DNA of 64,000 nt. Source: Euprymna scolopes. Lineage: Eukaryota. Shown piece after piece: positions 908-63,581 of the stretch. The notes below the pieces were generated by a model. That model searched no databases. It was not told the DNA's origin and was given only the letters and a program-made list of their open reading frames with translations. The DNA lies in NCBI GenBank assembly GCA_053919585.1, contig CM132792.1; one strand, written 5' to 3'. A program made the translations under genes and the position numbers. Every line of letters starts with the position of its first letter. Positions within the stretch are counted from its first letter, which is position 1.

Positions 908-909
<2 letters not shown>

Positions 910-8683: not shown

Positions 8684-9922
8684 ATGGACGCTCCAAAGAT
8701 CCAGAAAAATAAGGATCAGGTTAGAAAAAAGAAAGATGTTAAAATGAACGCTTCACGCGTCCAGAAAAAAAATGGTCGTGTTAAAAAGCCCCTGGATGCT
8801 TATTTCGTCTGGTGCAAACAGTTCAGAAAACAAATACGTGAACAAAATCCGACCATCACCATTATTGAAGCCAATGCCCTTCTCGGGAAAATATGGAGTG
8901 AAATGTCAGCGGAACAGAAAAAACCTTACTTCAAAGAGGCAGAACTTATCAAGAAACAACACCAATTAGATTATCCCGATTTCGAGTTTAAGTCGAAACC
9001 ACGTGTTAAAAACCCCAACAGGTTCCATGCCTACCCCTATCAACAACATGTGGTGTATTACATACAAACGCTGCCAAGCAAAGATAGAATGCCTCAGGAA
9101 TATTTTCATGAATCCACTTTCTTTGAGGTAACAAACAAAGCGGTAACTCAAGAAAATTCTCCTCACGTGGTCGGTACAGATGAAAGCATCAGATCCACGT
9201 TTTCTGAAATGCCATCCGAGACACGCGAGAATCTTTCCAACAAGAACAGCGTATGTGTTCCGCTACCTGAGACCGAACTCGACAAGGAGTCACGGGCATT
9301 CAGTAATGAACACCTATACAAAAGGCAGTCGAAATACAATCCCGTAATCATGACGGCTGGCCAAGACAACGATAGAGAGGTGATGGAATTTTCGTCTACT
9401 CACTCCAAATCCGAGAGCATTTCTGTAACGCTTCCTCACGCACCTGAGCAAAACGGGGTTTATTTTCATCCTGAATGTTACGGTCATGAATGCAATAATA
9501 GTAAGTCACAAAATTTTACAGCTTTAACTTACTCGCAAGCTAAAAATAAAATAATGGAAAAGTTTCAATTCTTAGACGAGAATTCGCCTATAAATACACC
9601 AATATGCAACGCAAATATTTTTCTTGGTGTTGAGAACGATAAAAATACGACGTTTTCTGAAGAAACTCTTGAAGAAGCCCAACATCTTACTTTTGTTGAA
9701 GATTATATTATCAATGCAACACCAAATAACGAGGAACATATCAACCAATGCACCGAAATGTTCCCAAACTCTAAATCTGATATTTTGAACGATGACGATT
9801 TCGAATCCCTGAATTGCCTGGAAGATTTGGTCTCGACTTTCTGCTTAGGTGAAGATTTCCCATCTACAATGCTTTGGAACGAAGAAGGTATTAATTTGGA
9901 AGACTTTGCAGAACTGTTGTGA
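8684..9922 (+). CDS. Intronless Sox/SRY-like HMG-box transcription factor, copy 1 (412 aa; N38D in HMG box)
   Basis: 1239-nt uninterrupted ORF in caaaATG context. Residues ~31-107 (RVKKPLDAYFVW...NP...LGKIW...EQKKPYFKEAE...H...YPDFEFK) align without gaps to the SRY/Sox HMG box. Acidic C-terminus. Confidence 0.9.
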   Translation: MDAPKIQKNKDQVRKKKDVKMNASRVQKKNGRVKKPLDAYFVWCKQFRKQIREQNPTITIIEANALLGKIWSEMSAEQKKPYFKEAELIKKQHQLDYPDFEFKSKPRVKNPNRFHAYPYQQHVVYYIQTLPSKDRMPQEYFHESTFFEVTNKAVTQENSPHVVGTDESIRSTFSEMPSETRENLSNKNSVCVPLPETELDKESRAFSNEHLYKRQSKYNPVIMTAGQDNDREVMEFSSTHSKSESISVTLPHAPEQNGVYFHPECYGHECNNSKSQNFTALTYSQAKNKIMEKFQFLDENSPINTPICNANIFLGVENDKNTTFSEETLEEAQHLTFVEDYIINATPNNEEHINQCTEMFPNSKSDILNDDDFESLNCLEDLVSTFCLGEDFPSTMLWNEEGINLEDFAELL

Positions 9923-10235
9923 TTTTGTATATCGATTGATAATTCAATCGATTAATTTGATCACATGATGATGATCGATGATATCTTTGATATCATGTGT
10001 ATATATTTTCTATTGTTCAATTTGTTTAATGTTATTTATTGATTTTAATTTTTTTCATTAGTGATTTTAAAAAAGTATGACTGTCAGGAATCTCGGATAA
10101 CGAAAGATAAACAGCTTAGCAAGCATACATCATATGCAAAAATTTTACCAACGATCAAACATAATTTTTAGAGTATTGATTTATTTAACGAGTAGTTTTA
10201 ACAAGTTTTTTGTTACAATAATAATAAACATAATC

Positions 10236-10259
10236 GTGTGTGTGTGTGTGTGTGTGTGT
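10236..10259. repeat. (GT)n microsatellite ~310 bp after the stop codon (paralogues ~24374, 37745, 50715)
   Basis: Direct reading; immediately follows an AATAAA hexamer at ~10222. Confidence 0.9.
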
Positions 10260-11354
10260 TAATTTAAAACGAAACGAAACCACCGACTATACATTAAACG
10301 TACAGAAACAGTAGATACATACGAAAGAAACACTTTATAAATTAGTTTCTCGTTATTTTGTTTATTAATTATTGAATTTCTTTTTTTAATAATTCTGTAA
10401 AATAAATTTTATTGAAATAAAATGTTTCATGTAACGTTAAATTTGTTTGTTTATTTATTGCAAAATGTAAGTTTCATCCGACAAGGCCGGATTAAGCTTA
10501 CAGAGAGACATTTTTTTTGTTTTCTGTCCTCGATGTTTTCACATGCGACAAATGTAAAATTTCCTGTGATTTTGAACTTTCTTGATTGAAGCAATTTCGT
10601 TCCGGTTCATTTAACTTTCCCATTTTTTCGTTTCAACAATGTTAAATTATTTTTATTCTTGATTATTAACTCTTTCGGAACACTTATCTATGGGCAGTTT
10701 TTATCCAACTTCAATTTTATTTATATACACTTTTTCTTATCACTTGAAATTTGGTGCATGTTGCCAGTGTGAGTGAGAAATGTTCAAACATTGCGCTCTA
10801 CAATATAAGCACAAATTTTATAACCTAATTCTAAACCTACCCTGTACCTAACTCTAAATTGCAGTCGCTTCGACTTAGGGTTAGTGGTAAAAGATTTGTT
10901 AACTACCCGAAAATGCAAGAATGGCATTTACATTGAATTCAGACTAAAATGACTCCAGTCAAGAAAGGTCAAAACGGTCAGATTCATTATGTAGCCTGAA
11001 TCAAAATAAGAGGTCATTTAAGGAGACTGTGATATTTTGGTCACAGCTCGTTAAATAAGTCGCTATGATAAATAGAGATAAAACATACCTTTGTAAACAG
11101 TACAATCCCCACGGTGAACCCTAAGTACTGGGTGGGAAAGAGCAACTTCTTATTTAAATAATTTAAGTCATTTAAATAAGCAAGTTGCTCTGCCCCACCC
11201 TGTATAATGTTAACCAAGGTAAACATCAAAACAACCAATGTAATTCATTGTTGGATCAAAATTTGTTATATATATATATAACGTAATAATCAGTAATAAA
11301 TATATAATTTCTCATATTTAATATTGATAATTATGTTTAGATAGGAAAAGGCTG

Positions 11355-12711
11355 TAGGCACCGCCAAAACTGTGGGGGCAGGTCAGTACTTTTTGACGGA
11401 CCGTCTTTTTAAAAATCTACCAAAAATCAGATAATTATCCATTCAATACGAAATTTTCAGCGATTATTAGGAGAAGAATGAACTTTATAACAGTGTACTT
11501 ATTTTTCATAAACGATATTTATATATATTTTTTTTTTGCTTACACCCCCCCCTTGTTTTGAAGTGGGAACAAATATGCTTAAAATAATCATCTGAAACTG
11601 AACACAAGATATTGTGTTGTTGTAAGGGACAGAATTATAGATTTAAAAAAAATGATAATAAATAAACTGTTTGCATACCTTATTTTGATGTCTGAATATC
11701 AGAATGCGATTGTGTTTAATTATCCCGCTTTTTAGTTTTGAAGTGTGAAATTCGGTGAATATGTTAAGTAAAATAATTAATTTAAGTTAAGCAAAACAAA
11801 AAAATTTTTTTTTTAATATTTATACGAAAAAAGGCATTTTAAAATTTTTGATAAATAAATTTACAATTTTTTTTCAGCGAGCCGAATAATGCATGACCAT
11901 TATTAAACAGGGCATGCTTTGAATAATCGATACAAAAAAAAAAATTCGATAAATATTGTGCCCTTTGTGTTAAAAATAGCATCATTTTTTTCGATCCCGT
12001 TTGAAAACGTTTGCTGCCTTTCGACTACGGTGGACCAAACGCGCTGAAATAATTTTTTTTATTCTGCTTTAAATTGCCCCCCCCCCCCCCACCATTTTGG
12101 GGAGCCTGGCCCCCACACACATACACATTAAAAACCAAACTCATACAAATGGTCACCCATCTGGTACTGGCCAGCCTCAGCTTAATAATACATTGAAATT
12201 TTCGTCACTGAAAAATAAGTTTTTTTGGCCTGTTTGGTCTTCCATAGTTTTCGTCTTATCAAACGCAAACGTAAACAGTGTCGATCTAGACTCTAGATCG
12301 ACGCGAAATATCTGGTTACCTATATGAATAAGTGGAATTATTTGAAATTCAGGTACTTATATTATAATATTTTTGCATATTCTCTTAGAAAATCACCCTA
12401 AATCTTAGTTAGACAATAAATAAATGAATTAATTATTTCAAAAACCTTTTTTTTTTAAAAATATTTATGTACGTTTTTTGTGCAAGACAAAAAATGTCAA
12501 TTGTTAACTTTTGGGGAAAATTTAACATTTAAAATTTAATTAAAAATAGTAGAAAAAGTTTTACATTATTCTGTTTTCTATATGATAAAATTCAGGGTTT
12601 TATCTTTCTAGAAAAAAAAAAGTTACTCAGAAATAATGGATTTTAATAAATGTAATTTCGTTTTAAAAAACAACAACAACTTGATTTTGCGGCCATTTTT
12701 GGCGGTGCCTA
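11355..12711. mobile_element. Non-autonomous TIR DNA transposon (1357 bp)
   Basis: Perfect 15-bp terminal inverted repeats taggcaccgccaaaa ... ttttggcggtgccta around AT-rich non-coding DNA. Flanks ggctg/ggcta, TSD ambiguous; superfamily not assigned. Confidence 0.8.
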
Positions 12712-13335
12712 GGCTAATGTATTAAAGGCTAAATAAAATATTTACTTGGAAATGGTTGATGGATAAAAAGATAGATTTTAGAAAAATAAATCTGATTTCA
12801 TGATGTCATCCATTTGCAAGTAAATATATCTACTAAAAAAAGCACTTTAATTAATCATAAATATATAATTTCTCATATTTAAGAGAAAAAATTGTGGAAA
12901 CCATAAAATGGCTTCTGTTCAAGTATATGTGTGTGCATCATGTCAAATCAAGTTGAAAGGAGGAAAGAAAATCAAGATGGCAGTGCCCACAACTTTTATA
13001 ACTAGCGATATCACAAACTGACTCAAAATCCCACTGCTCGACTGCATAAAATTAGGCTTCATAGAGAACGCAGACTGACGGTTGTATGAGAATCCTCGGA
13101 GAATGTTGTTACTGAGTCACTTTGTTTTCTTGCTTTTTTTTTGCTTGTTTTTTTTTTTTTGTACTTTCGTTTTTGTTGTACAAGCTATTTTTGGCAAATT
13201 TTATGGACAAATATGACATGAGTTGATTTCTGAATTCGAAAGATTCCTTGCTGATCCCTCCGCTATTGAATGGTTTGAAAAAGCTAAACGTGTTACCAGG
13301 CTGTTCAACTTATAAGAACCCATACCCAAAAGAGT

Positions 13336-14912
13336 ATGGCTCCATGGAAGCGTTCACTGCCAACGTAGAAGTGTGCGCACAAACGCTAAGACAATGATGG
13401 TGATGAGGAGAGGATGTGTCACTTCTGAATTTTTGAAAGGCTTTTGTCTCTGTTGCGTCTGCACTAACATTTTTTGGACTTCAGTTTAGTATGCAAGGAT
13501 CCGGTGTGACTAAAAGATGGAGCAGGAGTTCTGGGCTTGCAGGTCTGGAAAGAAAACAACATCCTCCAACGGAAACAAGGAAATCAGATTCCGGTAATTC
13601 CCGGTGTGCTGACATGTCGGTGTGTGTTTTCCCTGTGTGGGAAACTTGTTTGTCATTTTTCTGTGTGTGGATGGTCACAGTCAAGCGCCTGACGACTGCA
13701 GCAACCAAGGGATGGGAGGATGACATCAAACACCCCGATTTCTGTCACATATTATTGGAGATGCTGAGCAGGGTACAAGAGCAGGACCCTGTTAAAGGAG
13801 ACTGGAGCAGGAGCGGCAGCAAGATTACAGTCTGGCTAGATGTGAGTTCCATAGCTACAGGAATGGCATAGAAGGCAAGCGGTAATGTCATCGAAGTACA
13901 ATGTTGGCTGTGTCTGACCAATGATTCTAGGCATATAAATTTAGCTGAGCTTGACGTGATGCTCAGAGTGGGAGGAGCAACTGAGCCCTCGAATTGGTCA
14001 ATCATTTGGTGTGTATGCAACGGTGGATTTCTGACACCCTGTCCAGGAAGGCATGGGTAAATACAAAGGCTGCTTGTGAGATGCTGGTTAGGCAACAGTT
14101 ATGAACCATGCAATCTAGTGAAAGAGTATGAATTGACCATGGTTGAATTGACCATGGATGTGATGGATGTAAGAAGACCTTTTCACCAGATTACTGCTAA
14201 AGGAAGGAGGATCCGTGCTTGAAAGATGTTCACTAGTGGAAGGAGGACTACACCAAGACCATGTAGTCAATCTCCATTATCAAAGCGGACATCCGGGTGT
14301 GAATGAACTCTGTACTTTGTCAGTTTAATTGACCCACAAGTGTCCAACGAGAATATGAAATCTGTTGTAAAACCCTGTGAAATCTGTCAGCTAATCGATC
14401 TGGCACCTGATCGCTGAATAACATGGAAAGTAAATGCGAAAAGCAAAACTGAAGCAGACTGGCAGTGGATATAACTCACTACAACAGCAAAACTTTTTTG
14501 ACACTTGCGGTCCATCTAGGTTTGCATCTTACAATAAGAAAGTGTCTTCCTTGAACGAGGCTCACTAATGAAGATACTAATTTACAATTGCATTGCATTT
14601 GCTAGTGAGGAGTTCACGAGATTTGTGGATAGTTGGATTGTGCATCTGTAGTTTTGACATGCCTGTTCGGTGAGTGGGCACAGGATCATCGAACAAAACA
14701 ACCGGCAAGACTGCTGGTATAACTTCACCCAAACGATGACGTTTCACTTTCCACAGCACCAGCCAATGCATTGCACAGGTACCATGTAAGGAATTGTTTG
14801 GGTTAAAAACTTGCATGGCAGGTGTATGACAAGATATGTCATACACCTACAGATATATATGCATCACTGAGATATTCAGCTTGTGATTAGTGTGGGTTGT
14901 TGGTGTGCTCCG
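13336..14912 (+). mobile_element. Decayed Gypsy-type pol remnant, family B (RNase H + integrase)
   Basis: Broken frames give VKR...TKGWEDD...RVQEQDPVKGDW...VWLDVSSIATG, WLCLTNDSRHINLAELD (RNase H-like), GHPGV...TLYFV...VVKPCEICQLID (zinc-binding), RLAVDITHY and AFASEEFTRFVDSW (DDE core). Confidence 0.78.
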
Positions 14913-15075
14913 TCACTTTAAAGTTTTATGACCAGCGATGCAATTGCAATCATCATTTGATGATAAAAGCGAATCAGATTCTGAGACAGTGAGCTATCAC
15001 TTTGGTTTAAGCCAGCTCCATCAGTCAGTGATTTAGATATTAGCAGCCTCCTGGGACAGTCGGGACTCCCTGCTC

Positions 15076-15123
<48 letters not shown>

Positions 15124-15226: not shown

Positions 15227-15304
<78 letters not shown>

Positions 15305-19728: not shown

Positions 19729-19933
19729 ATTTCTTCGCAAATAAAAGGCGAACCTTCGCCTTTAACCAAACAACCTGTGTCGGTCATTCTCCTTTCCTTT
19801 TTGCTTTTTACTTTTGCCCGTGTCTACATTGTTAGTTGTAGGGTCGATTGTCCCAGTATAACCGGCCCCGCAGCAATCCAATTCTTTGCATCCTATTGAT
19901 TTCGCTCAAACTCCTTAAGCGCCGCGCTATTTG

Positions 19934-20017: not shown

Positions 20018-21810
20018 CACTAGCATTTTCTTCCAATAATAAACTTTTAGCTTAATTGAGTTTATCTCTATTTTTATCACAAGTATTTTTATATCTTTCA
20101 ATAAATCAGTTTTAGTTGGATCGAGTTTATAGATTTGAAAATTGTAAAATTATTTATTTTTACTTAAATTTTACTTGAATTGTGAATCATTAATTAATTT
20201 AAATTTAAATCGTTTAATATCGTTTAATATATATAATTTAGCCTTTTCATCGAATTAGTAACTAAAATAATATTTTGAATTATGATGCGAGATGAATTAC
20301 TTCCCTTTAACCGTTTCTTTAAGTTATTTTAAATAATTTAACTCGCCTCTTTTTTTTTTTTAATGACGAAGTCGGTATTTCATGTTTTCAGCGTTAAGTG
20401 CTGACATAAAATAAAAAGAATAATTTTTTTGTCACTTGATAATGATGTATATATCGGCAAAAGTATGGGCTGAAATCAAATATTAATAATAAATAATATT
20501 ACATTATATATTATATTCGCACATAATCGGGCCAGAAATCTTCAACTCGCATAAGGCCTGGAGGTGGAATCAGCTGAGTTTGAATGAGGGTTAATCAACA
20601 AATTTATCGAATATGTAATAAATGTTTTAATCGTTTAACCTTAGCTTAAAATGCCAAGAAAAGTTGAGAAACTCGGCACCCGACATAAACATGTATTCTA
20701 GCTAGTATCGATTGATCGATCGATGCCTCCGTTCAGTCTCAAGAGACAATGGACACCCCTATAAGGTAGCTGCACATGGAATTGGGAGGCAAGGCTACGC
20801 AATCTTAAGAGTGACGGGAACAATGGCGAGATAAGCGAAGAACACACACAGCATCTGGAAATGCTAAATGGTCAATCATAATTATGAAACAGATTTGAAT
20901 CAAAATTGATATAAGGATTCTAGACGTAAATGTTCAGTTGCATTATTTAATCATTTTTTATCTTCGTAAGGGACCATACATAACTTGACTTCACGGAATA
21001 AAAACAGAGCCGATCCAAGACAGCAGACCGAGTAAATACACGGGCTCAATATCACGCCAGATAGATTTTTATAAACAAAATTGGATTATCTTAAAACTTT
21101 ACTTCAATTTCAAAGTCGAATATCATGGATGAAAAAAGTCACGTTTAAAACATTTTCAATCCACGTAACGTAAAAACCACTCCACGAGCTGACGCCGTGC
21201 TAAATAAATTGAATAATAATTTAAAAAAAAAAAAAAAGCGTTATAATTCAATTCTGGTTTGTTTGAGCTTACATTCAAATGTATAGAGACGTGTGGAATG
21301 AAATACAAACCTGACGTTCGGATCAACTGTGAAACTGCAGCAAAGCTAAGAAGCATTTAATCTTTAAAAATATTTTAGCAAATTATTAATTTAAAATCAA
21401 ATATCTATTCTGTTTCTATTCTCGGCCAAAGAAGGAAATATTCTTCTAGATTAAGAAATTTAGTCCCTTTTTCTAAGCTGAATTTTTCCCTACAATAAAA
21501 CACATTCCATTTTTAACTGCTTTGATCGCAAGGCAAGTATATACTACTATGTAAGCATTCGATTTTTTCGACGGATTTTGTTTAATATGTATTGATTGTA
21601 AATTTTGGAAATAAGTTATATTTTTTGATTAATCATGCGTTTTTTAAAGCTTTCTTCACCATTTTTAAAAAAATTTCTTCGTCTCTCTTTATCCCCCCTC
21701 TCTCTCTTTCTCATATTCCTATCTCTAGCTTCTCTCTTCTCCCTCTCTTGCTTTCTGTTCCTTTTCCCTCTTTCTCCTTTTTCGACGCGCTATTCGTTTT
21801 AACCACATTA

Positions 21811-22388
21811 CGTCCAAGGATGGAATACTGTTGCCACATCTGGCAGGAGCTGCTAGAAAGGACTTGGCCTGCCTTGATAGAATTCAAAATAGACTTCGTA
21901 GCCTCGTAGGAGATGTCCTTTTCTCTTCCTTGGAACCTCTATCTCACAGAAGAGATGTTGCGAGTTTGTCTCTGATGTATCGTTATTTTCATGGAAAGTG
22001 TTCGACTGAGCTTCAATCTATGGTCCCCCCTCGCCAAACTTTCACAAGAAACACTCGTCTAGCTGTAAACACTATCAATAATTCCCCCCACTCTTTATCT
22101 GTGCCTAAACCTAAACGTAGATTCCATGAACAAAGCTTCTTTCTTAGAACTGCGCGCCTGTGGAATTGTCTTCCGTTTTCCTGCTTTCCGGCTGACTACA
22201 ATATGGTTGTCTTCAAGTCTAACGTAAATAAGTTCTTGATGAGCCGTTCCATATAAGTTATAAAATTTACCAAAATTTCATTACTAATGATTACTATATT
22301 GTCCAATTTCTAATGTACACTCTTTAACCCTTATCCTTGAGTGGCCTCTTGGCCTTGATAATGTGGTGATGCCTATGTAAAAAAAAAA
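21811..22388 (+). mobile_element. 5'-truncated CR1/L2-group LINE insertion (ORF2 C-terminus, 3'UTR, A-tail) ~440 bp upstream of copy 2
   Basis: Encodes RPRMEYCCHIW/AGAARKDLACLDRIQNR...LSHRRDVASLSLMYRYFHG...FFLRTARLWNCLP...FKSNVN, typical of invertebrate CR1-like ORF2 ends (1-nt frameshift after HIW). Ends in an A-tail, flanked by atta/atta. Absent at the equivalent site of copies 1, 3 and 4. Confidence 0.88.
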
Positions 22389-22825
22389 ATTATCTCTAAT
22401 TCCTTCATCCTCCTCTTCCTCACCACTCTCCTCCTACTCCTCTCTCTGTCTTTCTCTTTCGCCTTTTTCTTTCTCCTCCTCCTCATTCTCATATCATAAA
22501 AACCTGTTTCCTCTTCTCAATTTTCTCCTTTCTCCCCCCCCCTCCTCCTACTTTCTCTCTTCACTTCTCTCTCACTCTCTTGACCACTCTCTTTGTTAAT
22601 CATTTACGGCATTCGCTTCCTCCCACTACTTCTCTTATCATTAGCTGTTTTTATTCGAGACGCCAAGTCATTTTCTGTTTGAGACGCTACTCAAAAGATA
22701 CACGCTACCATAACAAGTAAACAAGATCCACAGTGATTAACTTTTATTTTAATTAATAAGTGAGAAAAGACCTTTTGGGCTATTCTTTCGCAAAAAAGTT
22801 TTAAAAAAAAAAAAATTATTTCAAA

Positions 22826-24064
22826 ATGGACGCTCCAAAGATCCAGAAAAATAAGGATCAGGTTAGAAAAAAGAAAGATGTTAAAGTGAACGCTTCACGC
22901 GTCCAGAAAAAAAATGGTCGTGTTAAAAAGCCCCTGAATGCTTATTTCGTCTGGTGCAAACAGTTCAGAAAACAAATACGTGAACAAAATCCGACCATCA
23001 CCATTATTGAAGCCAATGCCCTTCTCGGGAAAATATGGAGTGAAATGTCAGCGGAACAGAAAAAACCTTACTTCAAAGAGGCAGAACTTATCAAGAAACA
23101 ACACCAATTAGATTATCCCGATTTCGAGTTTAAGTCGAAACCACGTGTTAAAAACCCCAACAGGTTCCATGCCTACCCCTATCAACAACATGTGGTGTAT
23201 TACATACAAACGCTGCCAAGCAAAGATAGAATGCCTCAGGAATATTTTCATGAATCCACTTTCTTTGAGGTAACAAACAAAGCGGTAACTCAAGAAAATT
23301 CTCCTCACGTGCTCGGTACAGATGAAAGCATCAGATCCACGTTTTCTGAAATGCCATCCGAGACACGCGAGAATCTTTCCAACAAGAACAGCGTATGTGT
23401 TCCGCTACCAGAGACCGAACTCGACAAGGAGTCACCGGCATTCAGTAATGAACACCTATACAAAAGGCAGTCGAAATACAATCCCGTACTCATGACGGCT
23501 GGTCAAGACAACGATAGAGAGGTGATGGAATTTTCGTCTGCTCACTCCAAATCAGAGAGCATTTCTGTAACGCTTCCTCACGCACCTGAGCAAAACGGGG
23601 TTTATTTTCATCCTGAATGTTACGGTCATGAATGCAATAATAGTAAGTCACAAAATTTTACAGCTTTAACTTACTCGCAAGCTAAAAATAAACTAATGGA
23701 AAAGTTTCAATTCTTAGACGAGAATTCGCCTATAAATACACCAATATGCAACGCAAATATTTTTCTTGGTGTTGAGAACGATAAAAATACGACGTTTTCT
23801 GAAGAAACTCTTGAAGAAGCCCAACATCTCACTTTTGTTGAAGATTATATTATCAATGCAACACTAAATACCGAGGAACATATCAACGAATGCACCGAAA
23901 TGTTCCCCAACACGAAATCTGATATTTTGAACGATGACGATTTCGAATCCCTTAATTGTCTGGAAGATTTGGTCTCGACTTTCTGCTTAGGTGAAGATTT
24001 CCCATCTACAATGTTTTGGAACGAAGAAGGTATTAATTTGGAAGACTTTGCAGAACTGTTGTGA
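22826..24064 (+). CDS. Intronless Sox/SRY-like HMG-box transcription factor, copy 2 (412 aa)
   Basis: Full ORF, 12 aa differences from copy 1; HMG box begins RVKKPLNAYFVW. Confidence 0.92.
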   Translation: MDAPKIQKNKDQVRKKKDVKVNASRVQKKNGRVKKPLNAYFVWCKQFRKQIREQNPTITIIEANALLGKIWSEMSAEQKKPYFKEAELIKKQHQLDYPDFEFKSKPRVKNPNRFHAYPYQQHVVYYIQTLPSKDRMPQEYFHESTFFEVTNKAVTQENSPHVLGTDESIRSTFSEMPSETRENLSNKNSVCVPLPETELDKESPAFSNEHLYKRQSKYNPVLMTAGQDNDREVMEFSSAHSKSESISVTLPHAPEQNGVYFHPECYGHECNNSKSQNFTALTYSQAKNKLMEKFQFLDENSPINTPICNANIFLGVENDKNTTFSEETLEEAQHLTFVEDYIINATLNTEEHINECTEMFPNTKSDILNDDDFESLNCLEDLVSTFCLGEDFPSTMFWNEEGINLEDFAELL

Positions 24065-25470
24065 TTTTGTATATCGATTGATAATTCAATCGATTAATTT
24101 GATCACATGATCGATGATATCTTTGATATCATGTGTATATATTTTCTATTGTTCAATTTGTTTAATGTTATTTATTGATTTTAATTTTTTTCATTAGTGA
24201 TTTTAAAAAAGTATGACTCTCAGGAATCTCGGATAACGAAAGATAAACAGCTAAGCAAGCATACATCATATGCAAAAATTTTACCAACGATCAAACATCA
24301 TTTTTAGAGTATTGATTTATTTAACGAGCAGTTTTAACAAGTTTGTTGTTACAATAATAATAAACATAATCGGGTGTGTGTGTGTGTGTTAATTTAAAAC
24401 GAAACGAAACCACCGACTATACATTAAACGTACAGAAACGGTAGATACATACGAAAGAAACACTTTATAAATTAGTTTCTCGTTATTTTGTTTATTAATT
24501 ATTGAATTTCTTTTTTTAATAATTCTGTAAAATAAATTTTATTTCAATAAAATGTTTCATGTAACGTTAAATTTGTTTGTTTATTTATTGCAAAATGTAA
24601 GTTTCATCCGACAAGGCCGGATTAAGCTTACAGAGAGACATTTTTTTGTTTTCTGTCCTCGATGTTTTCACATGCGACAAATGTAAAATTTCCTGTGATT
24701 TTGAACTTTCTTGATTGAAGCAATTTCGTTCCGGTTCATTTAACTTTCCCATTTTTTCGTTTCAACAATGTTAAATTATTTTTATTCTTGATTATTAACT
24801 CTTTCGGAACACTTATCTATGGGCAGTTTTTATCCAACTTCAATTTTATTTATATACACTTTTTCTTATCACTTGAAATTTGGTGCATGTTGCCAGTGTG
24901 AGTGAGAAATGTTCAAACATTGCGCTCTACAATATAAGCACAAATTTTATAACCTAATTCTAAACCTACCCTGTACCTTACTCTAAATTGCAGTCGTGGT
25001 TAGTGGTAAAAAATTGTTAACTACCCCAAAATGCAAGAATGGCATTTACATTGAATTCAGACTAAAATGACTCCAGTCAAGAAAGTTCAAAACGGTCAGA
25101 TTCATTATGTAGCCTGAATCAAAATAAGAGGTCATTTAAGGAGACTGTGATATTTTGGTCACAGCTCGTTAAATAAGTCGCTATGATAAATAGAGATAAA
25201 AGATACCTTTGTAAACAGTACAATCCCCACGGTGAACCCTAAGTACTGGGTGGGAAAGAGCAACTTCTTATTTAAATAATTTAAGTCATTTAAATAAGCA
25301 AGTTGCTCTGCCCCACCCTGTATAATGTTAACCAAGGTAAACATCAAAACAACCAATGTCATTCATTGTTGGATCAAAATTTGTTATATATATATAACGT
25401 AATAATCAGTAATAAATATATAATTTCTCATATTTAATATTGATAATTATGTTTAGATAGGAAAAGGCTG

Positions 25471-25843
25471 TAGGCACCGCCAAAACTGTGGGGGCAGGTC
25501 AGTACTTTTTGACGGACCGTCTTTTTAAAAATCTACCAAAAATCAGATAATTATCCGATCAATACGAAATTTTCAGCGATTATTAGGAGAAGAATGAACT
25601 TTATAACAGTGTACTTATTTTTCATAAACGATATTTATATATATATTTTTTTTTTTGCTTACAACCCCCCCCCCCCTTGTTTTGAAGTGGGAACAAATAT
25701 GCTTAAAATAATCATCTGAAAATTCAGGGTTTTATCTTTCTAGAAAAAAAAATGTTACTCAGAAATAATGGAGTTTAATAAATGTAATTTCGTTTTAAAA
25801 AACAACAACAACTTGATTTTTCGGCCATTTTTGGCGGTGCCTA
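25471..25843. mobile_element. Internally deleted copy of the TIR element (373 bp)
   Basis: Same TIRs and flanks; ~980 bp removed at atcatctgaa|aattcaggg. Confidence 0.8.
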
Positions 25844-26589
25844 GGCTAATGTATTAAAGGCTAAATAAAATATTTACTTGGAAATGGTTGATGGATAAAA
25901 AAATAGATTTTAGAAAAATAAATCTGATTTCATGATGTCATCCATTTGCAAGTAAATATATCTACTAAAAAAAGCACTTTAATTAATAATAAATATATAA
26001 TTTCTCATATTTAAGAGAAAAAATTGTGGAGACCATAAAATGGCTTCTGTTCAAGTATATGTGTGTGCATCATGTCAAATCAAGTTGAAAGGAGGAAAGA
26101 AAATCAAGATGGCAGCGCCCACAACTTTTATAACTAGCGATATCACAAACTGACTCAAAATCCCACTGCTCGACTGCATAAAATTAGGCTTCATAGAGAA
26201 CGCAGACTGACGGTTGTATGAGAATCCTTGGAGAATGTTGTTACTGAGTCACTTTGTTTTCTTGCTTTTTTTTTGCTTGTTTTTTTTTTTTTTGTACTTT
26301 CGTTTTTGTTGTACAAGCTATTTTTGGCAAATTTTATGGACAAATATGACATGAGTTGATTCCTGAATTCGAAAGATTCCTTGCTGATCCCTCCGCTATT
26401 GAATGGTTTGAAAAAGCTAAACGTGTTACCAGGCTGTTCAACTTATAAGAACCCATACCCAAAAGAGTCTCTCATCCAAATGCAGTTCACAAAAGGAGTC
26501 TACACGATGTACAACCAACTCGGGAATGACATACATTATACAACGGGAGATGTGAAAATTGGTGGAAGAAGTGTGTGGGGTGGGGCTTA

Positions 26590-36235: not shown

Positions 36236-37436
36236 ATGGACGCTCCAAAGATCCAGAAAAATAAGGATCAGTTTAGAAAAAAGAAAGATGTTAAAATGAA
36301 CGCTTCACGCGCCCAGAAAAAAAATTGCCGTGTTAAAAAGCCCCTGAATGCTTATTTCGTCTGGTGCAAACAGTTCAGAAAACAAATACGTGAACAAAAT
36401 CCGACCATCACCATTATTGAAGCCAATGCCCTTCTCGGGAAAATATGGAGTGAAATGTCAGCGGAACAGAAAAAACCTTACTTCAAAGAGGCAGAACTTA
36501 TCAAGAAACAACACCAATTAGATTATCCCGATTTCGAGTTTAAGTCGAAACCACGTGTTAAAAACCCCAACAGGTTCCATGCCTACCCCTATCAACAACA
36601 TGTGGTGTATTACATACAAACGCTGCCAAGCAAAGATAGAATGCCTCAGGAATATTTTCATGAATCCACTTTCTTTGAGGTAACAAACAAAGCGGTAACT
36701 CAAGAAAATTCTCCTCGCGTGGTCGGTACAGATGAAAGCATCAGATCCACGTTTTCTGAAATGCCATCCGAGACACGCGAGAATCTTTCCAACAAGAACA
36801 GCGTATGTGTTCCGCTACCAGAGACCGAACTCGACAAGGAGTCACGGGCATTCAGTAATGAACACCTATACAAAAGGCAGTCGAAATTCAATCCCGTAAT
36901 CATTTTCGTCTACTCACTCCAAATCCGAGAGCATTTCTGAAACGCTTCCTCACGCACCTGAGCAAAACGGGGTTTATTTTGATCCTGAATGTTACGGTCA
37001 TGAATGCAATAATAGTAAGTCACAAAATTTTACAGCTTTACCTTTCTCGCAAGCTAAAAATAAACTAATGGAAAAGTTTCAATTCTTAGACGAGAATTCG
37101 CCTATAAATACACCAATATGCAACGCAAATATTTTTCTTGGTGTTGAGAACGATAAAAATACGACGTTTTCTGAAGAAACTCTTGAAGAAGCCCAACATC
37201 TCACTTTTATTGAAGATGACATTATCAATGCAACACCAAATAACGAGGAACATATCAACCAATGCACCGAAATGTTCCCCAACACGAAATCTGATATTTT
37301 GAACGATGACGATTTCGAATCCCTGAATTGCCTGGAAGATTTGGTCTCGACTTTCTGCTTAGGTGAAGATTTCCCATCTACAATGTTTGGGAACGAAGAA
37401 GGTATTAATTTGGAAGACTTTGCAGAACTGCTATGA
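36236..37436 (+). pseudogene. HMG-box gene copy 3, frameshifted by a 38-bp deletion (truncated 234-aa product possible, stop at 36938-36940)
   Basis: Reads gtaatc|attttcg at ~36901 where intact copies have gtaatc-atgacggctggccaagacaacgatagagaggtgatgga-attttcg. Length 1201 vs 1239 nt. The C-terminal part survives as ORF 37068-37436. Confidence 0.9.
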
Positions 37437-40713: not shown

Positions 40714-40853
40714 NNNNNNNNNNNNNNNNNNNNNNNNNNNNNNNNNNNNNNNNNNNNNNNNNNNNNNNNNNNNNNNNNNNNNNNNNNNNNNNNNNNNNNN
40801 NNNNNNNNNNNNNNNNNNNNNNNNNNNNNNNNNNNNNNNNNNNNNNNNNNNNN
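40714..40853. other. 140-N gap at the position of a (CA)n tract in other units
   Basis: Flanks match those of ~833-930. Confidence 0.9.
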
Positions 40854-49167: not shown

Positions 49168-50406
49168 ATGGACGCTCCAAAGATCCAGAAAAATAAGGAT
49201 CAGGTTAGAAAAAAGAAAGATGTTAAAATGAACGCTTCACGCGTCCAGAAAAAAAATGGTCGTGTTAAAAAGCCCCTGAATGCTTATTTCGTCTGGTGCA
49301 AACAGTTCAGAAAACAAATACGTGAACAAAATCCGACCATCACCATTATTGAAGCCAATGCCCTTCTCGGGAAAATATGGAGTGAAATGTCAGCGGAACA
49401 GAAAAAACCTTACTTCAAAGAGGCAGAACTTATCAAGAAACAACACCAATTAGATTATCCCGATTTCGAGTTTAAGTCGAAACCACGTGTTAAAAACCCC
49501 AACAGGTTCCATGCCTACCCCTATCAACAACATGTGGTGTATTACATACAAACGCTGCCAAGCAAAGATAGAATGCCTCAGGAATATTTTCATGAATCCA
49601 CTTTCTTTGAGGTAACAAACAAAGCGGTAACTCAAGAAAATTCTCCTCACGTGCTCGGTACAGATGAAAGCATCAGATCCACGTTTTCTGAAATGCCATC
49701 CGAGACACGCGAGAATCTTTCCAACAAGAACAGCGTATGTGTTCCGCTACCAGAGACCGAACTCGACAAGGAGTCACCGGCATTCAGTAATGAACACCTA
49801 TACAAAAGGCAGTCGAAATACAATCCCGTTACCATGATGGCTGTCCAAGACAACGATAGAGAGGTGATGGAATTTTCGTCTGCTCACTCCAAATCCGAGA
49901 GCATTTCTGAAACGCTTCCTCACGCACCTGAGCAAAACGGGGTTTATTTTCATCCTGAATGTTACGGTCATGAATGCAATAATAGTAAGTCACAAAATTT
50001 TACAGCTTTAACTTTCTCGCAAGCTAAAAATAAACTAATGGAAAAGTTTCAATTCTTAGACGAGAATTCGCCTATAAATACACCAATATGCAACGCAAAT
50101 ATTTTTCTTGGTGTTGAGAACGATAAAAATACGACGTTTTCTGAAGAAACTCTTGAAGAAGCCCAACATCTCACTTTTGTTGAAGATGACATTATCAATG
50201 CAACACCAAATAACGAGGAACATATCAACCAATGCACCGAAATGTTCCCCAACACGAAATCTGATATTTTGAACGATGACGATTTCGAATCCCTGAATTG
50301 CCTGGAAGATTTGGTCTCGACTTTCTGCTTAGGTGAAGATTTCCCATCTACAATGCTTTGGAACGAAGAAGGTATTAATTTGGAAGACTTTGCAGAACTG
50401 TTGTGA
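49168..50406 (+). CDS. Intronless Sox/SRY-like HMG-box transcription factor, copy 4 (412 aa; ~250-bp deletion just upstream)
   Basis: Full ORF; HMG box identical to copy 2. Confidence 0.9.
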   Translation: MDAPKIQKNKDQVRKKKDVKMNASRVQKKNGRVKKPLNAYFVWCKQFRKQIREQNPTITIIEANALLGKIWSEMSAEQKKPYFKEAELIKKQHQLDYPDFEFKSKPRVKNPNRFHAYPYQQHVVYYIQTLPSKDRMPQEYFHESTFFEVTNKAVTQENSPHVLGTDESIRSTFSEMPSETRENLSNKNSVCVPLPETELDKESPAFSNEHLYKRQSKYNPVTMMAVQDNDREVMEFSSAHSKSESISETLPHAPEQNGVYFHPECYGHECNNSKSQNFTALTFSQAKNKLMEKFQFLDENSPINTPICNANIFLGVENDKNTTFSEETLEEAQHLTFVEDDIINATPNNEEHINQCTEMFPNTKSDILNDDDFESLNCLEDLVSTFCLGEDFPSTMLWNEEGINLEDFAELL

Positions 50407-57324: not shown

Positions 57325-58370
57325 GTCGATAGGAAAGCAAAAACTGTTACTGAGTATAGTTAGTGAATCGGTGAGGACATTGATATGTCTGCCTGACCTG
57401 GTAGACTGTGTTGGTTTAGGTGAGACGCCGTTGCTGAAATAAACTGTATGCGTAGGCTACGTTGGTTTCTGACTTGTGGTATCATCGTGGGCTTTGTGTA
57501 ACGTGTCTGAAGAATACCGTGCACTCCGTCATTCTGGATAATTACATGAGTCCATGTGTTAATATTCTGGGGAACATGAGTAGTGACATTTTTGTGGTCT
57601 GGCTTTAATATTCAGAAGTTTTGCCATTTATTCCTTCACGCGAGAGGTGTAGCTCATTAGGTATGGCATCTGCTCTGGTGTAGCTGGTGTGTCCATCTCT
57701 CTGGGTAAGGTCAGTGAGGTTCCGTAAACCATTTCGTTGGAAGACAAGCCGATGTCCATTTTAACAATCGATTGAATACCGAGAAGCACAAAAGGCAGGC
57801 ATTCTATCCATCTGATGGGGTCAGAGTATGCTTTAAGACATGCCTTTAACTGTCGAGGCAAGGTGCTAAATCATGCCGTTTGCTGTTGGGTGATAAGACA
57901 TAGTGCATATGTTTCTGCATCCAAGCAGGCGGTACAGCTCGAAAAAAAGATGTGAGTCAAATTGTCAGTTGTAATGGTATTAGGTATGCCATAACGGGAT
58001 ATCCAATGTATAATGAGTGCTTTGGTGGCAGTTTAAGCAGAAATATCTCTAATCGGGAATGGCTTCAGGCCATCTCGAATACCTGGTGGATGTGGACCCA
58101 TTATGTCTATGTGGATATGCTGAAAACGAGCCTTGGGGGTTAAAAACGTTGCAGGAGGACTCTAAATGTGACGTTGAATCTTGGACTTCTGGCAAGGAAG
58201 ACAACGCCGTGTCCATTCTCGTATATCTCGATTGATGGCAGTCCATACAAAACGTGACATCACCAATTTCTTAGTCAAATGGACGCCAGGATGTGACAGA
58301 CTCTGCAGATTTGTAAACACAACTCGCTTATGCTTGAGGGGCACATATGGACGCTCGTGACCATATCACT
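57325..58370 (-). mobile_element. Gypsy integrase remnant, family A (unit 5)
   Basis: SLSHPG...WTRRCLPCQKSK and core fragments; PPT/LTR-start region deleted here. Confidence 0.85.
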
Positions 58371-59046
58371 TCATTGGAGAAACGTAAAGAAAATTGCTTG
58401 AACATTAGGTTTAGCGATCCTGTTGCAGTTTCAAATCACTACCTCTATTTTTAATTCCCCCCCCCCCTTTTAATCATCGATTTCGCTACACATGTCGGAA
58501 TTCAAATATATCAAACAAAACGCCAATAATTCAGGCAATTGACTTTTTACTTTTTAGACGACTGATGCTACCAGTCACGTTGACCGAATCTTCCAGCCAA
58601 AGGATTTCCAGCAGTGGCAGCCGTCTTAGCAGCAGGTCAAACATCTCTTAGAAGGTCTAAACAACCAGCCCTTATCAAGGCTAATAAGTTTTTCACTAAT
58701 GCGATTCACTACTGCTTGCCTTCTGAGACCCACCAGCAGCAAACTTCACTTTCACCTCTGGCCTGCAACCTCGCTCCTCCGATCTGCAACCTCGCATGCA
58801 CCTGGTTCCCTACTGACCATTCGTTCCTTATCACTGACCCCACGTCCTCACTGTCGTCCATTCCTTAACACTGACCCCACATTCTCAGTGTCCACTGACC
58901 ATTCCAGATCGCCCTGACGGCCAGCCGATCGTCCAGACCCAGCGAGAAACCCTAAACCAGAGTACCTGGTCCAGCCCTCCAGACGAAGCCACCGGTAACA
59001 TGCGACCTTCCGGACAACTAGCATCCAGCTCATACAATTTTTCGCA

Positions 59047-59235
59047 TTTTTTTTTTTTTTTACCACTTATCAAGACTAAGAGGCCACTACAAGATAACGG
59101 TTAAAAAGTGTACAGTAGAAATTGGACAATATAGTAATGGTTAGTAAATGGAAATTCGGTAAATTTGTTAACAAGTGAAACGGCTAATCAGGAACTTGTT
59201 TACGTTAGACTTGAAGACAATCATATTGTAGTCAG
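59047..59235 (-). mobile_element. CR1-like LINE 3' fragment (unit 5)
   Basis: Paralogous to 19539-19728. Confidence 0.75.
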
Positions 59236-59441
59236 ATTTCTTCGCAAATAAAAGGCGAACCTTCGCCTTTAACCAAACAACCTGTGTCGGTCATTCTCCT
59301 TTCCTTTTTGCTGTTTACTTTTGCCCGTGTCTACATTGTTAGTTGTAGGGTCGATTGTCCCAGTATAACCGGCCCCGCAGCAATCCAATTCTTTGCATCC
59401 TATTGATTTCGCTCAAACTCCTTAAGCGCCGCGCTATTTGA

Positions 59442-59527
<86 letters not shown>

Positions 59528-61327
59528 TATCACTAGCATTTTCTTCCAATAATAAACTTTTAGCTTAATTGAGTTTATCTCTATTTTTATCACAAGTATT
59601 TTTATATCTTTCAATAAATCAGTTTTAGTTGGATCGAGTTTATAGATTTGAAAATTGTAAAATTCTTTATTTTTACTTAAATTTTACTTGAATTGTGAAT
59701 CATTAATTAGTTTAAATTTAAATCGTTTAATATCGTTTAATATATATAATTTAGCCTTTTCATCGAATTAGTAACTAAAATAATATTTTGAATTATGATG
59801 CGAGATGAATTACTTCCCTTTAACCCTTTCTTTAAGTTATTTTAAATAATTTAACTCGACTCTTTATTTTTTTAATGACGAAGTCGGTATTTCATGTTTT
59901 CAGCGTTAAGTGCTGACATAAAATAAAAAGAATAATTTTTTTGTCACTTGATAATGATGTATATATCGGCAAAAGTATGGGCTGAAATCAAATATTAATA
60001 ATAAATAATATTACATTATATATTATATTCACACATAATCGGGCCAGAAATCTTCAACTCGCATAAGGCCTGGAGGTGGAATCAGCTGAGTTTGAATGAG
60101 GGTTAATCAACAAATTTATCGAATATGTAATAAATGTTTTAATCGTTTAACCTTAGCTTAAAATGCCAAGAAAAGTTGAGAAACTCGGCACCCGACATAA
60201 ACATGTATTCTAGCTAGTATCGATTGATCGATCGATGCCTCCGTTCAGTCTCAAGAGACAATGGACACCCCTATAAGGTAGCTGCACATAGAATTGGGAG
60301 GCAAGGCTACGCAATCTTAAGAGTGACGGGAACAATGGCGAGATAAGCGAAGAACACACACAGCATCTGGAAATGCTAAATGGTCAATCATAATTATGAA
60401 ACAGATTTGAATCAAAATTGATATAAGGATTCTAGACGTAAATGTTCAGTTGCATTATATAATCATTTTTTATCTTCGTAAGGGACCATACATAACTTGA
60501 CTTCACGGAATAAAAACAGAGCCGATCCAAGACAGCAGACCGAGTAAATACACGGGCTCAATATCACTCCAGATAGATTTTTATAAACAAAATTGGATTA
60601 TCTTAAAACTTTACTTCAATTTCAAAGTCGAATATCATGGATGAAAAAAGTCACGTTTAAAACATTTTCAATCCACGTAACGTAAAAACCACTCCACGAG
60701 CTGACGCCGTGCTAAATAAATTGAATAATAATTAAAAAAAAAAAAAAAAAAAGCGTTATAATTCAATTCTGGTTTGTTTGAGCTTACATTCAAATGTATA
60801 GAGACGTGTGGAATGAAATACAAACCTGACGTTCGGATCAACTGTGAAACTGCAGCAAAGCTAAGAAGCATTTAATCTTTAAAAATATTTTAGCAAATTA
60901 TTAATTTAAAATCAAATATCTATTCTGTTTCTATTCTAGGCCAAAGAAGGAAATATTCTTCTAGATTAAGAAATTTAGTCCCTTTTTCTAAGTTGAATTT
61001 TTCCCTACAATAAAACACATTCCATGTTTAACTGCTTTGATCGCAAGGCAAGTATATACTATTATGCAAGCATTCGATTTTTTCGACGGATTTTGTTTAA
61101 TATGTATTGATTGTAAATTTTGGAAATAAGTTATATTTTTTGATTAATCATGCGTTTTTTAAAGCTTTCTTCACCATTTTTTAAAAAATTTCTTCGTCTC
61201 TCTTTATCCCCCCTCTCTCTCTCTTTCTCATATTCCTATCTCTAGCTTCTCTCTTCTCCCTCTCTTGCTTTCTGTTCCTTTTCCCTCTTTCTCCTTTTTC
61301 GACGCGCTATTCGTTTTAACCACATTA

Positions 61328-61905
61328 CGTCCAAGGATGGAATACTGTTGCCACATCTGGCAGGAGCTGCTAGAAAGGACTTGGCCTGCCTTGATAGAAT
61401 GCAAAATAGACTTCGTAGCCTCGTAGGAGATGTCCTTTTCTCTTCCTTGGAACCTCTATCTCACAGAAGAGATGTTGCGAGTTTGTCTCTGATGTATCGT
61501 TATTTTCATGGAAAGTGTTCGACTGAGCTTCAATCTATGGTCCCCCCTCGCCAAACTTTCACAAGAAACACTCGTCTAGCTGTAAACACTATCAATAATT
61601 CCCCCCACTCTTTATCTGTGCCTAAACCTAAACGTAGATTCCATGAACAAAGCTTCTTTCTTAGAACTGCACCCCTGTGGAATTGTCTTCCGTTTTCCTG
61701 CTTTCCGGCTGACTACAATATGGTTGTCTTCAAGTCTAACGTAAATAAGTTCTTGATGAGCCGTTCCATATAAGTTATAAAATTTACCAAAATTTCATTA
61801 CTAATGATTACTATATTGTCCAATTTCTAATGTACACTCTTTAACCCTTATCCTTGAGTGGCCTCTTGGCCTTGATAATGTGGTGATGCCTATGTAAAAA
61901 AAAAA
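61328..61905 (+). mobile_element. Same 5'-truncated CR1/L2-group LINE insertion upstream of copy 5
   Basis: Same junctions, length (578 bp) and frameshift as 21811-22388. Confidence 0.88.
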
Positions 61906-62342
61906 ATTATCTCTAATTCCTTCATCCTCCTCTTCCTCACCACTCTCCTCCTACTCCTCTCTCTCTCTCTCTTTCTCTTTCGCCTTTTTCTTTCTCCTCC
62001 TCCTCATTCTCATATCATAAAAACCTGTTTCCTCTTCTCAATTTTCTCCTTTCTCCCCCCTCCTCCTACTTTCTCTCTTCACTTCTCTCTCACTCTCTTG
62101 ACCACTCTCTTTGTTAATCATTTACGGCATTCGCTTCCTCCCACTACTTCTCTTATCATTAGCTGTTTTTATTCGAGACGCCAAGTCATTTTCTGTTTGA
62201 GACGCTACTCAAAAGATACACGCTACCATAACAAGTAAACAAGATCCACAGTGATTAACTTTTATTTTAATTAATAAGTGAGAAAAGACCTTTTGGGCTA
62301 TTCTTTCGCAAAAAAGTTTAAAAAAAAAAAAATTATTTCAAA

Positions 62343-63581
62343 ATGGACGCTCCAAAGATCCAGAAAAATAAAGATGAGGTTAGAAAAAAGAAAGATGTTA
62401 AAGTGAACGCTTCACGCGTCCAGAAAAAAAATGGTCGTGTTAAAAAGCCCCTGAATGCTTATTTCGTCTGGTGCAAACAGTTCAGAAAACAAATACGTGA
62501 ACAAAATCCGACCATCACCATTATTGAAGCCAATGCCCTTCTCGGGAAAATATGGGGTGAAATGTCAGCGGAACAGAAAAAACCTTACTTCAAAGAGGCA
62601 GAACTTATCAAGAAACAACACCAATTAGATTATCCCGATTTCGAGTTGAAGTCGAAACCACGTGTTAAAAACCCCAACAGGTTCCATGCCTACCCCTATC
62701 AACAACATGTGGTGTATTACATACAAACGCTGCCAAGCAAAGATAGAATGCCTCAGGAATATTTTCATGAATCCACTTTCTTTGAGGTAACAAACAAAGC
62801 GGTAACTCAAGAAAATTCTCCTCACGTGCTCGGTACAGATGAAAGCATCAGATCCACGTTTTCTGAAATGCCATCCGAGACACGCGAGAATCTTTCCAAC
62901 AAGAACAGCGTATGTGTTCCGCTACCAGAGACCGAACTCGACAAGGAGTCACGGGCATTCAGTAATGAACACCTATACAAAAGGCAGTCGAAATACAATC
63001 CCGTTATCATGACGGCTGGCAAAGACAACGATAGAGAGGTGATGGAATTTTCGTCTACTCACTCCAAATCCAAGAGCATTTCTGAAACGCTTCCTCACGC
63101 ACCTGAGCAAAACGGGGTTTATTTTGATCCTGAATGTTACGGTCATGAATGCAATAATAGTAAGTCACAAAATTTTACAGCTTTACCTTTCTCGCAAGCT
63201 AAAAATAAAATAATGGAAAAGTTTCAATTCTTAGACGAGAATTCGCCTATAAATACACCAATATGCAATGCAAATATTTTTCTTGGTGTTGAGAACGATA
63301 AAAATACGACGTTTTCTGAAGAAACTCTTGAAGAAGCCCAACATCTCACTTTTATTGAAGATGACATTATCAATGCAACACCAAATAACGAGGAACATAT
63401 CAACCAATGCACCGAAATGTTCCCCAACACGAAATCTGATATTTTGAACGATGACGATTTCGAATCCCTGAATTGTCTCGAAGATTTGGTTTCGACTTTC
63501 TGCTTAGGTGAAGATTTCCCATCTACAATGTTTTGGAACGAAGAAGGTATTAATTTGGATGACTTTGCAGAACTGTTGTGA
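62343..63581 (+). CDS. Intronless Sox/SRY-like HMG-box transcription factor, copy 5 (412 aa; S72G and F102L in HMG box; terminal copy)
   Basis: Full ORF with WGEMS and FELK variants; followed after ~200 bp by sequence not seen in other units. Confidence 0.9.
   Translation: MDAPKIQKNKDEVRKKKDVKVNASRVQKKNGRVKKPLNAYFVWCKQFRKQIREQNPTITIIEANALLGKIWGEMSAEQKKPYFKEAELIKKQHQLDYPDFELKSKPRVKNPNRFHAYPYQQHVVYYIQTLPSKDRMPQEYFHESTFFEVTNKAVTQENSPHVLGTDESIRSTFSEMPSETRENLSNKNSVCVPLPETELDKESRAFSNEHLYKRQSKYNPVIMTAGKDNDREVMEFSSTHSKSKSISETLPHAPEQNGVYFDPECYGHECNNSKSQNFTALPFSQAKNKIMEKFQFLDENSPINTPICNANIFLGVENDKNTTFSEETLEEAQHLTFIEDDIINATPNNEEHINQCTEMFPNTKSDILNDDDFESLNCLEDLVSTFCLGEDFPSTMFWNEEGINLDDFAELL

Follow-up and report, generated by a model that had tools for sequence, protein, structure and literature searches.

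DUX4/D4Z4 and mouse Dux are built of head-to-tail, kilobase-sized units, each of which carries one intronless transcription factor open reading frame (ORF), and they have a lineage-specific origin. The multi-copy Sry of some rodents is Y-linked. Sox genes are among the most copy-number-stable developmental regulators of animals, and invertebrates usually have well under a dozen of them. In cephalopods, tandem expansions are known for protocadherins, C2H2 zinc fingers, and reflectins. The tandem gene-family expansions of cephalopod genomes are discussed in PMC13218726. Here, we analyzed a 64,000-nucleotide (nt) stretch of the Euprymna scolopes genome (the window; G000:C10:48732001-48796000 of a 5.9-Gb assembly, in which chromosome C10 measures 162 Mb), which holds part of a tandem array of an intronless gene with a Sox-type HMG box. 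The locus as a whole is best explained as a young tandem array of expressed, selected intronless Sox-like genes, a reading to which we assign a probability of roughly 0.6. We found no report of a Sox-type family among the cephalopod tandem expansions in the searchable literature.

In a self-BLAST of the window, head-to-tail units that are 90-98.7% identical recurred about every 13-14 kb. Searching the entire genome in six frames and adding the flanking DNA extended the array to nine units (u1 to u9) of 12.9-14.1 kb with one ORF each. They span about 114 kb (G000:C10:48685740-48799764), and their ORF starts run from 48685740 to 48794343. The array begins upstream of the window, units u5 to u9 fall inside it, and the repeat decays about 4 kb past the last ORF (u9), beyond the window. 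Thus, the original prediction of at least five head-to-tail units of about 13-14 kb was correct but understated. An intact single-exon ORF of 412 or 413 amino acids (aa) is present in eight of the nine units. The copies in the window are the following:

8684 to 9922, + strand: Sox-like ORF copy 1 (u5), 412 aa, intact (ORF call, alignment, Pfam)
22826 to 24064, + strand: Sox-like ORF copy 2 (u6), 412 aa, intact (HMG box residues 33-100 = 22922-23125)
36236 to 37436, + strand: Sox-like copy 3 (u7), broken (38-bp deletion, ORF nt 667-704)
49168 to 50406, + strand: Sox-like ORF copy 4 (u8), 412 aa, intact (ORF call, alignment)
62343 to 63581, + strand: Sox-like ORF copy 5 (u9, the last unit), 412 aa, intact (ORF call, alignment)

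As had been predicted, each unit contains one single-exon ORF of this kind and four of the five window copies are open; their proteins are 95-97% identical. Copy 3 starts with an ATG at 36236, is frameshifted, and reaches a premature stop at 36940, which gives a 234-aa product with an undamaged HMG box. Two older relics lie 40-60 kb upstream of the array. One (48624345) has an intact 417-aa ORF with 81% protein identity to the array ORFs, and the other (48644960) is broken.

Spacer identity was 97.9-98.6% among u1, u2, u5, and u8, 96.6% between u6 and u7, and 93.6-95.4% for the remaining pairs, a pattern that, judged from sequence, shows two age classes of units. A simple three-unit higher-order repeat was considered and rejected: only the u1/u2/u5/u8 group reaches 98-98.6%, and u3/u6 and u4/u7 remain unpaired. 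By these comparisons, the locus is a tandem segmental-duplication cluster remodelled by unequal exchange and transposable element (TE) insertion, not a homogenised satellite.

Like DUX4/D4Z4 and Dux, the locus consists of head-to-tail, kilobase-scale units with one intronless transcription factor ORF and has a lineage-specific origin. To this extent the name macrosatellite, used in the original prediction, is apt. It does not fit in another respect, since the units are 94-98.6% identical and TE-heterogeneous, unlike D4Z4. Compared with both systems, they are also four times longer, less homogenised, and marked by unit-specific TE insertions; they encode an HMG box instead of a homeobox, and each has a candidate poly(A) signal. 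Like rodent multi-copy Sry, the gene is of the Sox class, amplified, intronless, and fast-evolving, and it combines conservation of the HMG box with a labile C-terminal region. In contrast to Sry, the array occupies a large chromosome that is probably autosomal, and its box shares about 30% identity with that of SRY. The cephalopod expansions resemble it in being local tandem duplications in a repeat-rich genome of the same taxon. The array differs from the described systems in its domain class, its large heterogeneous units, its probable autosomal setting, and its orphan Sox-like clade.

Sequence comparison among the nine units revealed ORF-specific constraint. Pairwise substitutions amounted to 1.7% in the ORF versus 4.3-6.1% in the flanks (430 bp upstream and 1.2 kb downstream of the ORF), and gap openings per kb were 0.4-0.7 in the ORF and 10-14 in the flanks. 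The original prediction had named a ratio of non-synonymous to synonymous divergence (omega) near 1, measured against an outgroup orthologue, as speaking against it. Using the codon model GY+F3X4, with p tested against omega = 1, we obtained an omega of 0.54 (p = 2e-4) for the eight young copies and the intact relic. The HMG box gave 0.21 (p = 0.03) and the C-terminal part 0.56 (p = 0.0014). By the Nei-Gojobori method (NG86), omega against the relic was 0.38 at a synonymous divergence (dS) of 0.23, with values of 0.04-0.14 in the HMG box, and the relic ORF is open despite this divergence. The picture is that of a conserved DNA-binding domain and a tail that evolves fast yet is constrained.

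Signs of transcription came from sequencing run X4. Its summed word depth was 100-330 over positions 22476-24248, versus 3-25 in the flanks, and it dropped from 215 to 45 to 20 across 24052-24642, coinciding with the following feature:

24359 to 24364, + strand: candidate poly(A) signal AATAAA, about 295 nt past the stop codon of copy 2 (sequence reading)

X4 is probably an RNA library; it is not whole-genome DNA, because it comprises only 147 Mb of contigs. Its profile is compatible with each unit producing an unspliced mRNA of about 1.9 kb. ORF words were also present in several other runs of the species (24-66% of words) and in runs of related species (5-44%); in the DNA runs of two sister species, 30-44% of the ORF 31-mers were present. 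We consider it likely that the array is transcribed in some tissue or stage.

The encoded protein matched the Pfam HMG_box family (PF00505) at residues 33-100 with 65.8 bits (cutoff, 25.4; E = 4.7e-18). AlphaFold2, run on a 12-sequence family alignment, predicted a three-helix box (helices 37-54, 60-73, and 76-96; predicted local distance difference test score, 74-81). The above-threshold Pfam score and this fold make it a member of the HMG-box superfamily. The rest of the protein was predicted to be disordered, except for short tail helices at 380-387 and 406-409. Residues 1-35 carry a net charge of +11, and residues 341-412 one of -17. When HMG boxes in the PDB were ranked against it, SRY and SOX17/18/11/30/9/4 scored best (54-61 bits for the latter six), followed by HMGB1 (about 45 bits), CIC (33 bits), and LEF1 (26 bits), with HMGB2 and TOX likewise behind Sox. 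Helix 1 reads KPLNAYFVW and departs from the Sox signature RPMNAFMVW, to which it is identical at five of nine positions; the Sepia homologues described below have RPLNAFFVW. The Asn typical of sequence-specific boxes is retained, and the F-M wedge is replaced by Y-F in the array protein and by F-F in Sepia. From general knowledge of Sox/TCF proteins, we infer a DNA-bending factor with an acidic activation tail: the box would be of the Sox/TCF class, with sequence-specific DNA binding and bending, and the acidic, hydrophobic-studded tail is a putative transactivation domain. At the other end of the protein, the 20-residue N-terminal extension MDAPKIQKNKDQVRKKKDVK resembles the next segment, MNASRVQKKNGRVKKP, which is the start point of all paralogues (residues 1-35, window 22826-22930). 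This suggests that the extension may have come from a small internal duplication. The second Met is Val in four copies.

In the classical definition, a Sox protein has an HMG box at least 50% identical to the SRY box. The array box falls short of this, with about 30% identity to SRY (hand count of the alignment). It is 35-40% identical to SOX30, SOX5, SOX17, Sox7/17, SoxB1, and SOX14, the value for SOX30 being 36-37%. Nevertheless, it is nearer to Sox than to HMGB, TCF/LEF, or CIC, both by PDB bit scores and by its tree position among Sox clades. The tree was a maximum likelihood (ML) HMG-box phylogeny, an analysis that the original prediction had proposed. It used 79 alignment columns, the two-box locus L056 on chromosome C29 as outgroup, and reference clades named from cluster annotations, with SoxC and SoxE unlabelled in the set. 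The family formed one clade (support 98/97), in which 14 loci of this genome made up an inner clade (100/98). No sister group was supported, and there was no positive support for a grouping with SOX30. In approximately unbiased (AU) tests, sister positions to SoxB (log-likelihood difference [dlnL] 29.6, p = 0.039), SoxD (dlnL 21.4, p = 0.014), and SoxF (dlnL 32.0, p = 0.012) were rejected, and a grouping with vertebrate SOX30 was not (dlnL 5.6, p = 0.30). The best named match of the Sepia homologue outside cephalopods was SOX-30 (E = 1.2e-17, versus 1.7e-11 for SOX-5). By these sequence criteria the family is Sox-related, and its descent from SoxH is possible. The description "SRY/SoxH-like" in the original prediction fits loosely: the box identities to SRY and SOX30 are low, and the SoxH sister position is one that the tests did not reject.

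SoxH/Sox30 genes, as known from vertebrates, oyster and scallop (SoxH), and Octopus sinensis ("Sox-30-like"), resemble the array gene in their Sox-class HMG box and form the only tested grouping that was not rejected. The array gene differs from them in being multi-copy and intronless, and beyond the box the sequences showed no resemblance. In molluscs, SoxH/Sox30 genes have a testis bias (PMC11202624, PMC13219418): the Octopus "Sox-30-like" gene has testis-biased expression (PMC11202624), and scallop SoxH acts in spermiogenesis (PMC13219418). Because of these octopus and scallop findings, a male-germline role of the array gene would be a reasonable first guess if the SoxH link holds.

The array is one part of a larger family of Sox-like genes without introns, of which this genome has 20 loci or more. 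Further loci were found on chromosome C24 (at 89.47-89.62, 101.78-101.80, 100.23, and 87.49 Mb) and on C34 (at 22.15 Mb), and a decayed copy is on C2. Several of the C24 and C34 paralogues are uninterrupted single-exon ORFs, 253-540 aa long, in which the HMG box comes right at the start and the C-terminal motifs are shared. Compared with them, the array protein has lost about 95 residues after the box, has gained the 20-residue N-terminal extension, and ends earlier. Outside this genome, similarity beyond the box was detected only in cuttlefish proteins, namely, CAE1301939.1 of Acanthosepion (Sepia) pharaonis (590 aa, annotated "SOX15_30"), its 97% relative P0001, and P0162. The Sepia homologue is 50% identical to the window protein in the box and 42% across 315 tail residues. 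Its gene in S. pharaonis is a single exon of 1773 nt with no HMG neighbour within 10 kb. Since the Sepia protein finds its best match in this genome on C24 (57%), the genome is that of a decapodiform other than Sepia, and the C10 array is a derived offshoot of the family.

In a search of 5.8 billion proteins with a family profile, only the Sepia cluster was retrieved at E <= 1e-10, and no octopus or other mollusc protein was. The window ORF had no match in a word-indexed protein search, nor did the window protein in an exact look-up across assemblies. In the data searched, the family is thus limited to decapodiform cephalopods, and neither it nor the array was found in the searchable literature. 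The original prediction of a lineage-specific, tandemly amplified, intronless gene is borne out in these respects, with a Sox-type HMG box and with intact copies under purifying selection. Six Logan contigs of about 3.44 kb that encode the Sepia homologue were considered as mRNA and rejected: they align colinearly with the S. pharaonis genome over their full length, and because the initial 36 nt of the contigs occur again close by, the contigs may end at breaks in the assembly graph. We did not count them as transcripts.

Side observations were made on the family and on other HMG-box loci. In the main C24 cluster (C24:89470899-89624762; L015/L016, L018/L019), plus-strand copies at 89.47-89.53 Mb are mirrored by minus-strand copies at 89.55-89.62 Mb around about 89.561 Mb, and the paired loci are 89-95% identical in reverse complement. 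The arrangement suggests that the cluster is a large inverted duplication. L025/L026 at 101.79/101.80 Mb form a further inverted pair, with 95% identity. On C8 (101772492-101786364; L052, L053), two adjacent HMG boxes of very similar sequence group with the metagenome/Logan proteins P0117, P0061, and P0100 in a separate clade on a long branch; they may represent another pair of lineage-specific Sox-like genes. Two contigs of the catfish Clarias magur carry several partial "SOX-30" models (P0081, P0272-P0274), and the gene models P0003, P0004, and P0006 from ENA assemblies have two to four near-identical Sox-type boxes in a row. Tandem Sox-like amplification may thus occur in other animals too.

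Between the ORFs, the window contains the following features:

1 to 8683, + strand: spacer tail of u4 (ORF at C10:48726600, upstream of the window); includes an N gap at 6295-6424
11355 to 12712, strand not assigned: 1.36-kb dispersed repeat in the u5 spacer, with 95-96% identical copies on many chromosomes; missing from most other units
21810 to 22389, + strand: 580-bp retroposon fragment with a poly(A) tail, located 437 bp upstream of ORF copy 2; RNA libraries contain it in great abundance
40714 to 40853, strand not assigned: assembly gap of 140 N in the u7 spacer; flanks colinear with u8 54812/54903 and u6 28085/28185
61327 to 61906, + strand: second 580-bp retroposon fragment, 437 bp upstream of copy 5; 99.5% identical to 21810-22389

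Both N gaps fall within spacers, over 2 kb away from the nearest ORF, and no reading frame spans either. The positions equivalent to the edges of the gap at 40714-40853 are about 90 bp apart in u8 and about 100 bp apart in u6; if u7 resembles its neighbours, this gap would lack about 90-100 bp. The edges of the gap at 6295-6424 match u5 positions 19913/20032, which are 118 bp apart. A third assembly gap sits just outside the window. Whole extra units may be concealed within N gaps.

The two retroposon fragments are 99.5% identical and lie at the same offset from their ORFs; they were therefore copied together with the unit. The fragment has no Pfam match. Poly(A) RNA runs covered it to a depth of about 600-1800, and contig runs to a summed word depth of 10^5-10^6, values that point to a very abundant, transcribed element family. 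Copies of the 1.36-kb repeat with 95-96% identity are present on at least 20 chromosomes, in full-length (about 1.36 kb) and about 1.08-kb forms, and the repeat looks like a recently active non-autonomous element. At 25403-26028, a 49-nt direct repeat (84% identical) flanks a segment of about 530 bp with a poly(A) RNA depth of 20-66, which looks like another inserted, transcribed element. According to the original prediction, every transposon ORF around the genes is broken. This was checked in part: the window has no other ORF of at least 250 aa, and seven ORFs of at least 90 aa in one unit lack a Pfam match.

How could such a locus have arisen? A unit of about 13.5 kb would have been copied repeatedly by segmental duplication or unequal crossing-over, giving a young tandem gene array. 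Each unit would carry one intronless gene of a cephalopod-specific Sox-related family. Several copies would be expressed from their own short transcription units (about 22.45-24.38 kb in copy 2); output would scale with copy number, and expression would be restricted to particular tissues or stages.

Several points weigh against such an array of expressed and selected genes. The eight young copies alone gave an omega of 0.60, which is borderline against 1 (p = 0.054), and their variable codons comprise 38 non-synonymous and 13 synonymous ones; pairwise omega reached up to 0.83. Copy 3 (u7) is already broken, as is one relic. Gene conversion could also reduce ORF divergence, although it alone would not clear indels from the ORF only. 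In the poly(A) RNA-seq runs X23 and X24 of the same species (tissue unspecified; about 12% of reads sampled), depth was 0-1.8 over the ORF, and nearby retroposon fragments reached hundreds to thousands. For X4 and the other libraries in which the ORF is present, the assignment to RNA is a guess, and collapsed k-mers of the near-identical ORFs could inflate the contrast between ORF and flanks in X4. Run X2, listed as possible RNA, was rejected as RNA evidence; it has Tn5/Nextera mosaic ends at read ends and a flat, DNA-like profile, and is probably a tagmentation library (resembling the assay for transposase-accessible chromatin, ATAC) or a DNA-containing one. The young-copy omega values, the broken copies, and the ORF without reads in the two poly(A) libraries favour a recent amplification that is mostly decaying, with at most one copy (or only the C24/C34 paralogues) functional and the rest too young to be broken. 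We regard this as unlikely, because indels in the ORF occur at a 15- to 30-fold lower frequency, and substitutions at a 2.5- to 3.5-fold lower one, than in flanks of the same age. Moreover, eight of nine ORFs are open though the spacers differ by up to 5-6%, and the relic is open at a dS of 0.23 with an HMG-box omega of 0.04-0.14.

The remaining explanations are far less probable than a decaying array. The array might work mainly as DNA or RNA, as a small-RNA or heterochromatin cluster with an incidental ORF. The TE-rich spacers and their low, roughly even coverage in X2 and X4 would suit this, but the constraint is ORF-specific and follows the reading frame, omega is lower in the HMG box than in the tail, and in-frame integrity is kept. 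In addition, Rfam found no family and Tandem Repeats Finder (TRF) no short tandem repeats in the window. Such a role is therefore very improbable. Even less credence is due to an assembly artefact, with haplotypes or mis-joined contigs written as tandem copies, as the two N gaps in the window and the one just beyond it could suggest. Nine units exceed what two haplotypes could give. Nor can they be a pair of haplotypes, because up to 6% sequence difference and insertions private to single units separate them; their spacers diverge by 1.4-6% and contain TE insertions and indels specific to individual units. Both window gaps are colinear and lie in spacer DNA, and X4 contigs carry variants of different copies. 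Finally, the ORF might be cargo of a DNA transposon, for example a Helitron, or a gene that was retroposed and spreads with a TE, an alternative raised in the original prediction. The gene is indeed intronless, a degraded copy is on C2, and dispersed repeats are plentiful in the spacers (18,524 first-look candidates). However, in the six-frame whole-genome search every copy with at least 75% protein identity fell within a 171-kb stretch of C10, the family comprises about 20 loci in few clusters and not hundreds, and no terminal inverted or long direct repeats bracketing the ORF were found. Instead, the entire 13.5-kb unit was duplicated in register, unrelated TE fragments included. Spread as transposon cargo is thus about as improbable as an artefact.

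The chromosomal setting bears on a possible role in sex determination. Coleoids have a ZZ/Z0 system. Their Z carries the number 43 in both E. scolopes and D. pealeii, 44 in the E. berryi assembly, and 49 in that of S. officinalis (PMC10925132, PMC13122204). We take these high numbers to mean that the Z is among the smallest chromosomes. C10 is the tenth-largest chromosome in an assembly where sequence sizes fall roughly with number. Since the array is on the large C10 and the Z is numbered 43-49, the array is probably autosomal, and its location weakens the reading as a sex determiner. A search for the Z with the published E. berryi and D. pealeii sexing primers gave no match at up to one mismatch; at three mismatches, the E. 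berryi pair gave only scattered chance-level or repeat matches.

By analogy, a germline or early-embryo setting is a plausible guess for the array of Sox-like genes. A more far-reaching proposal, which we hold to be rather doubtful, is that decapodiforms evolved a SoxH-derived intronless Sox family whose youngest member was amplified to 9-11 copies. Expressed in a brief burst in germ cells or at cleavage stages, it would provide a high dose of a single activator, with array length as a heritable dosage dial, and would be a molluscan functional analogue of Dux/DUX4 or multi-copy Sry.

For a group of regulators whose copy number is so stable, a clade-specific family of at least 20 intronless Sox-like genes, with one locus amplified nine-fold and held by selection, would be a clear exception. 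The array would be a candidate regulator specific to this lineage, in animals that are just beginning to be accessible to genetic work on sex determination and early development. It also offers a concrete locus for asking whether tandem copy number tunes transcription factor dose outside mammals.

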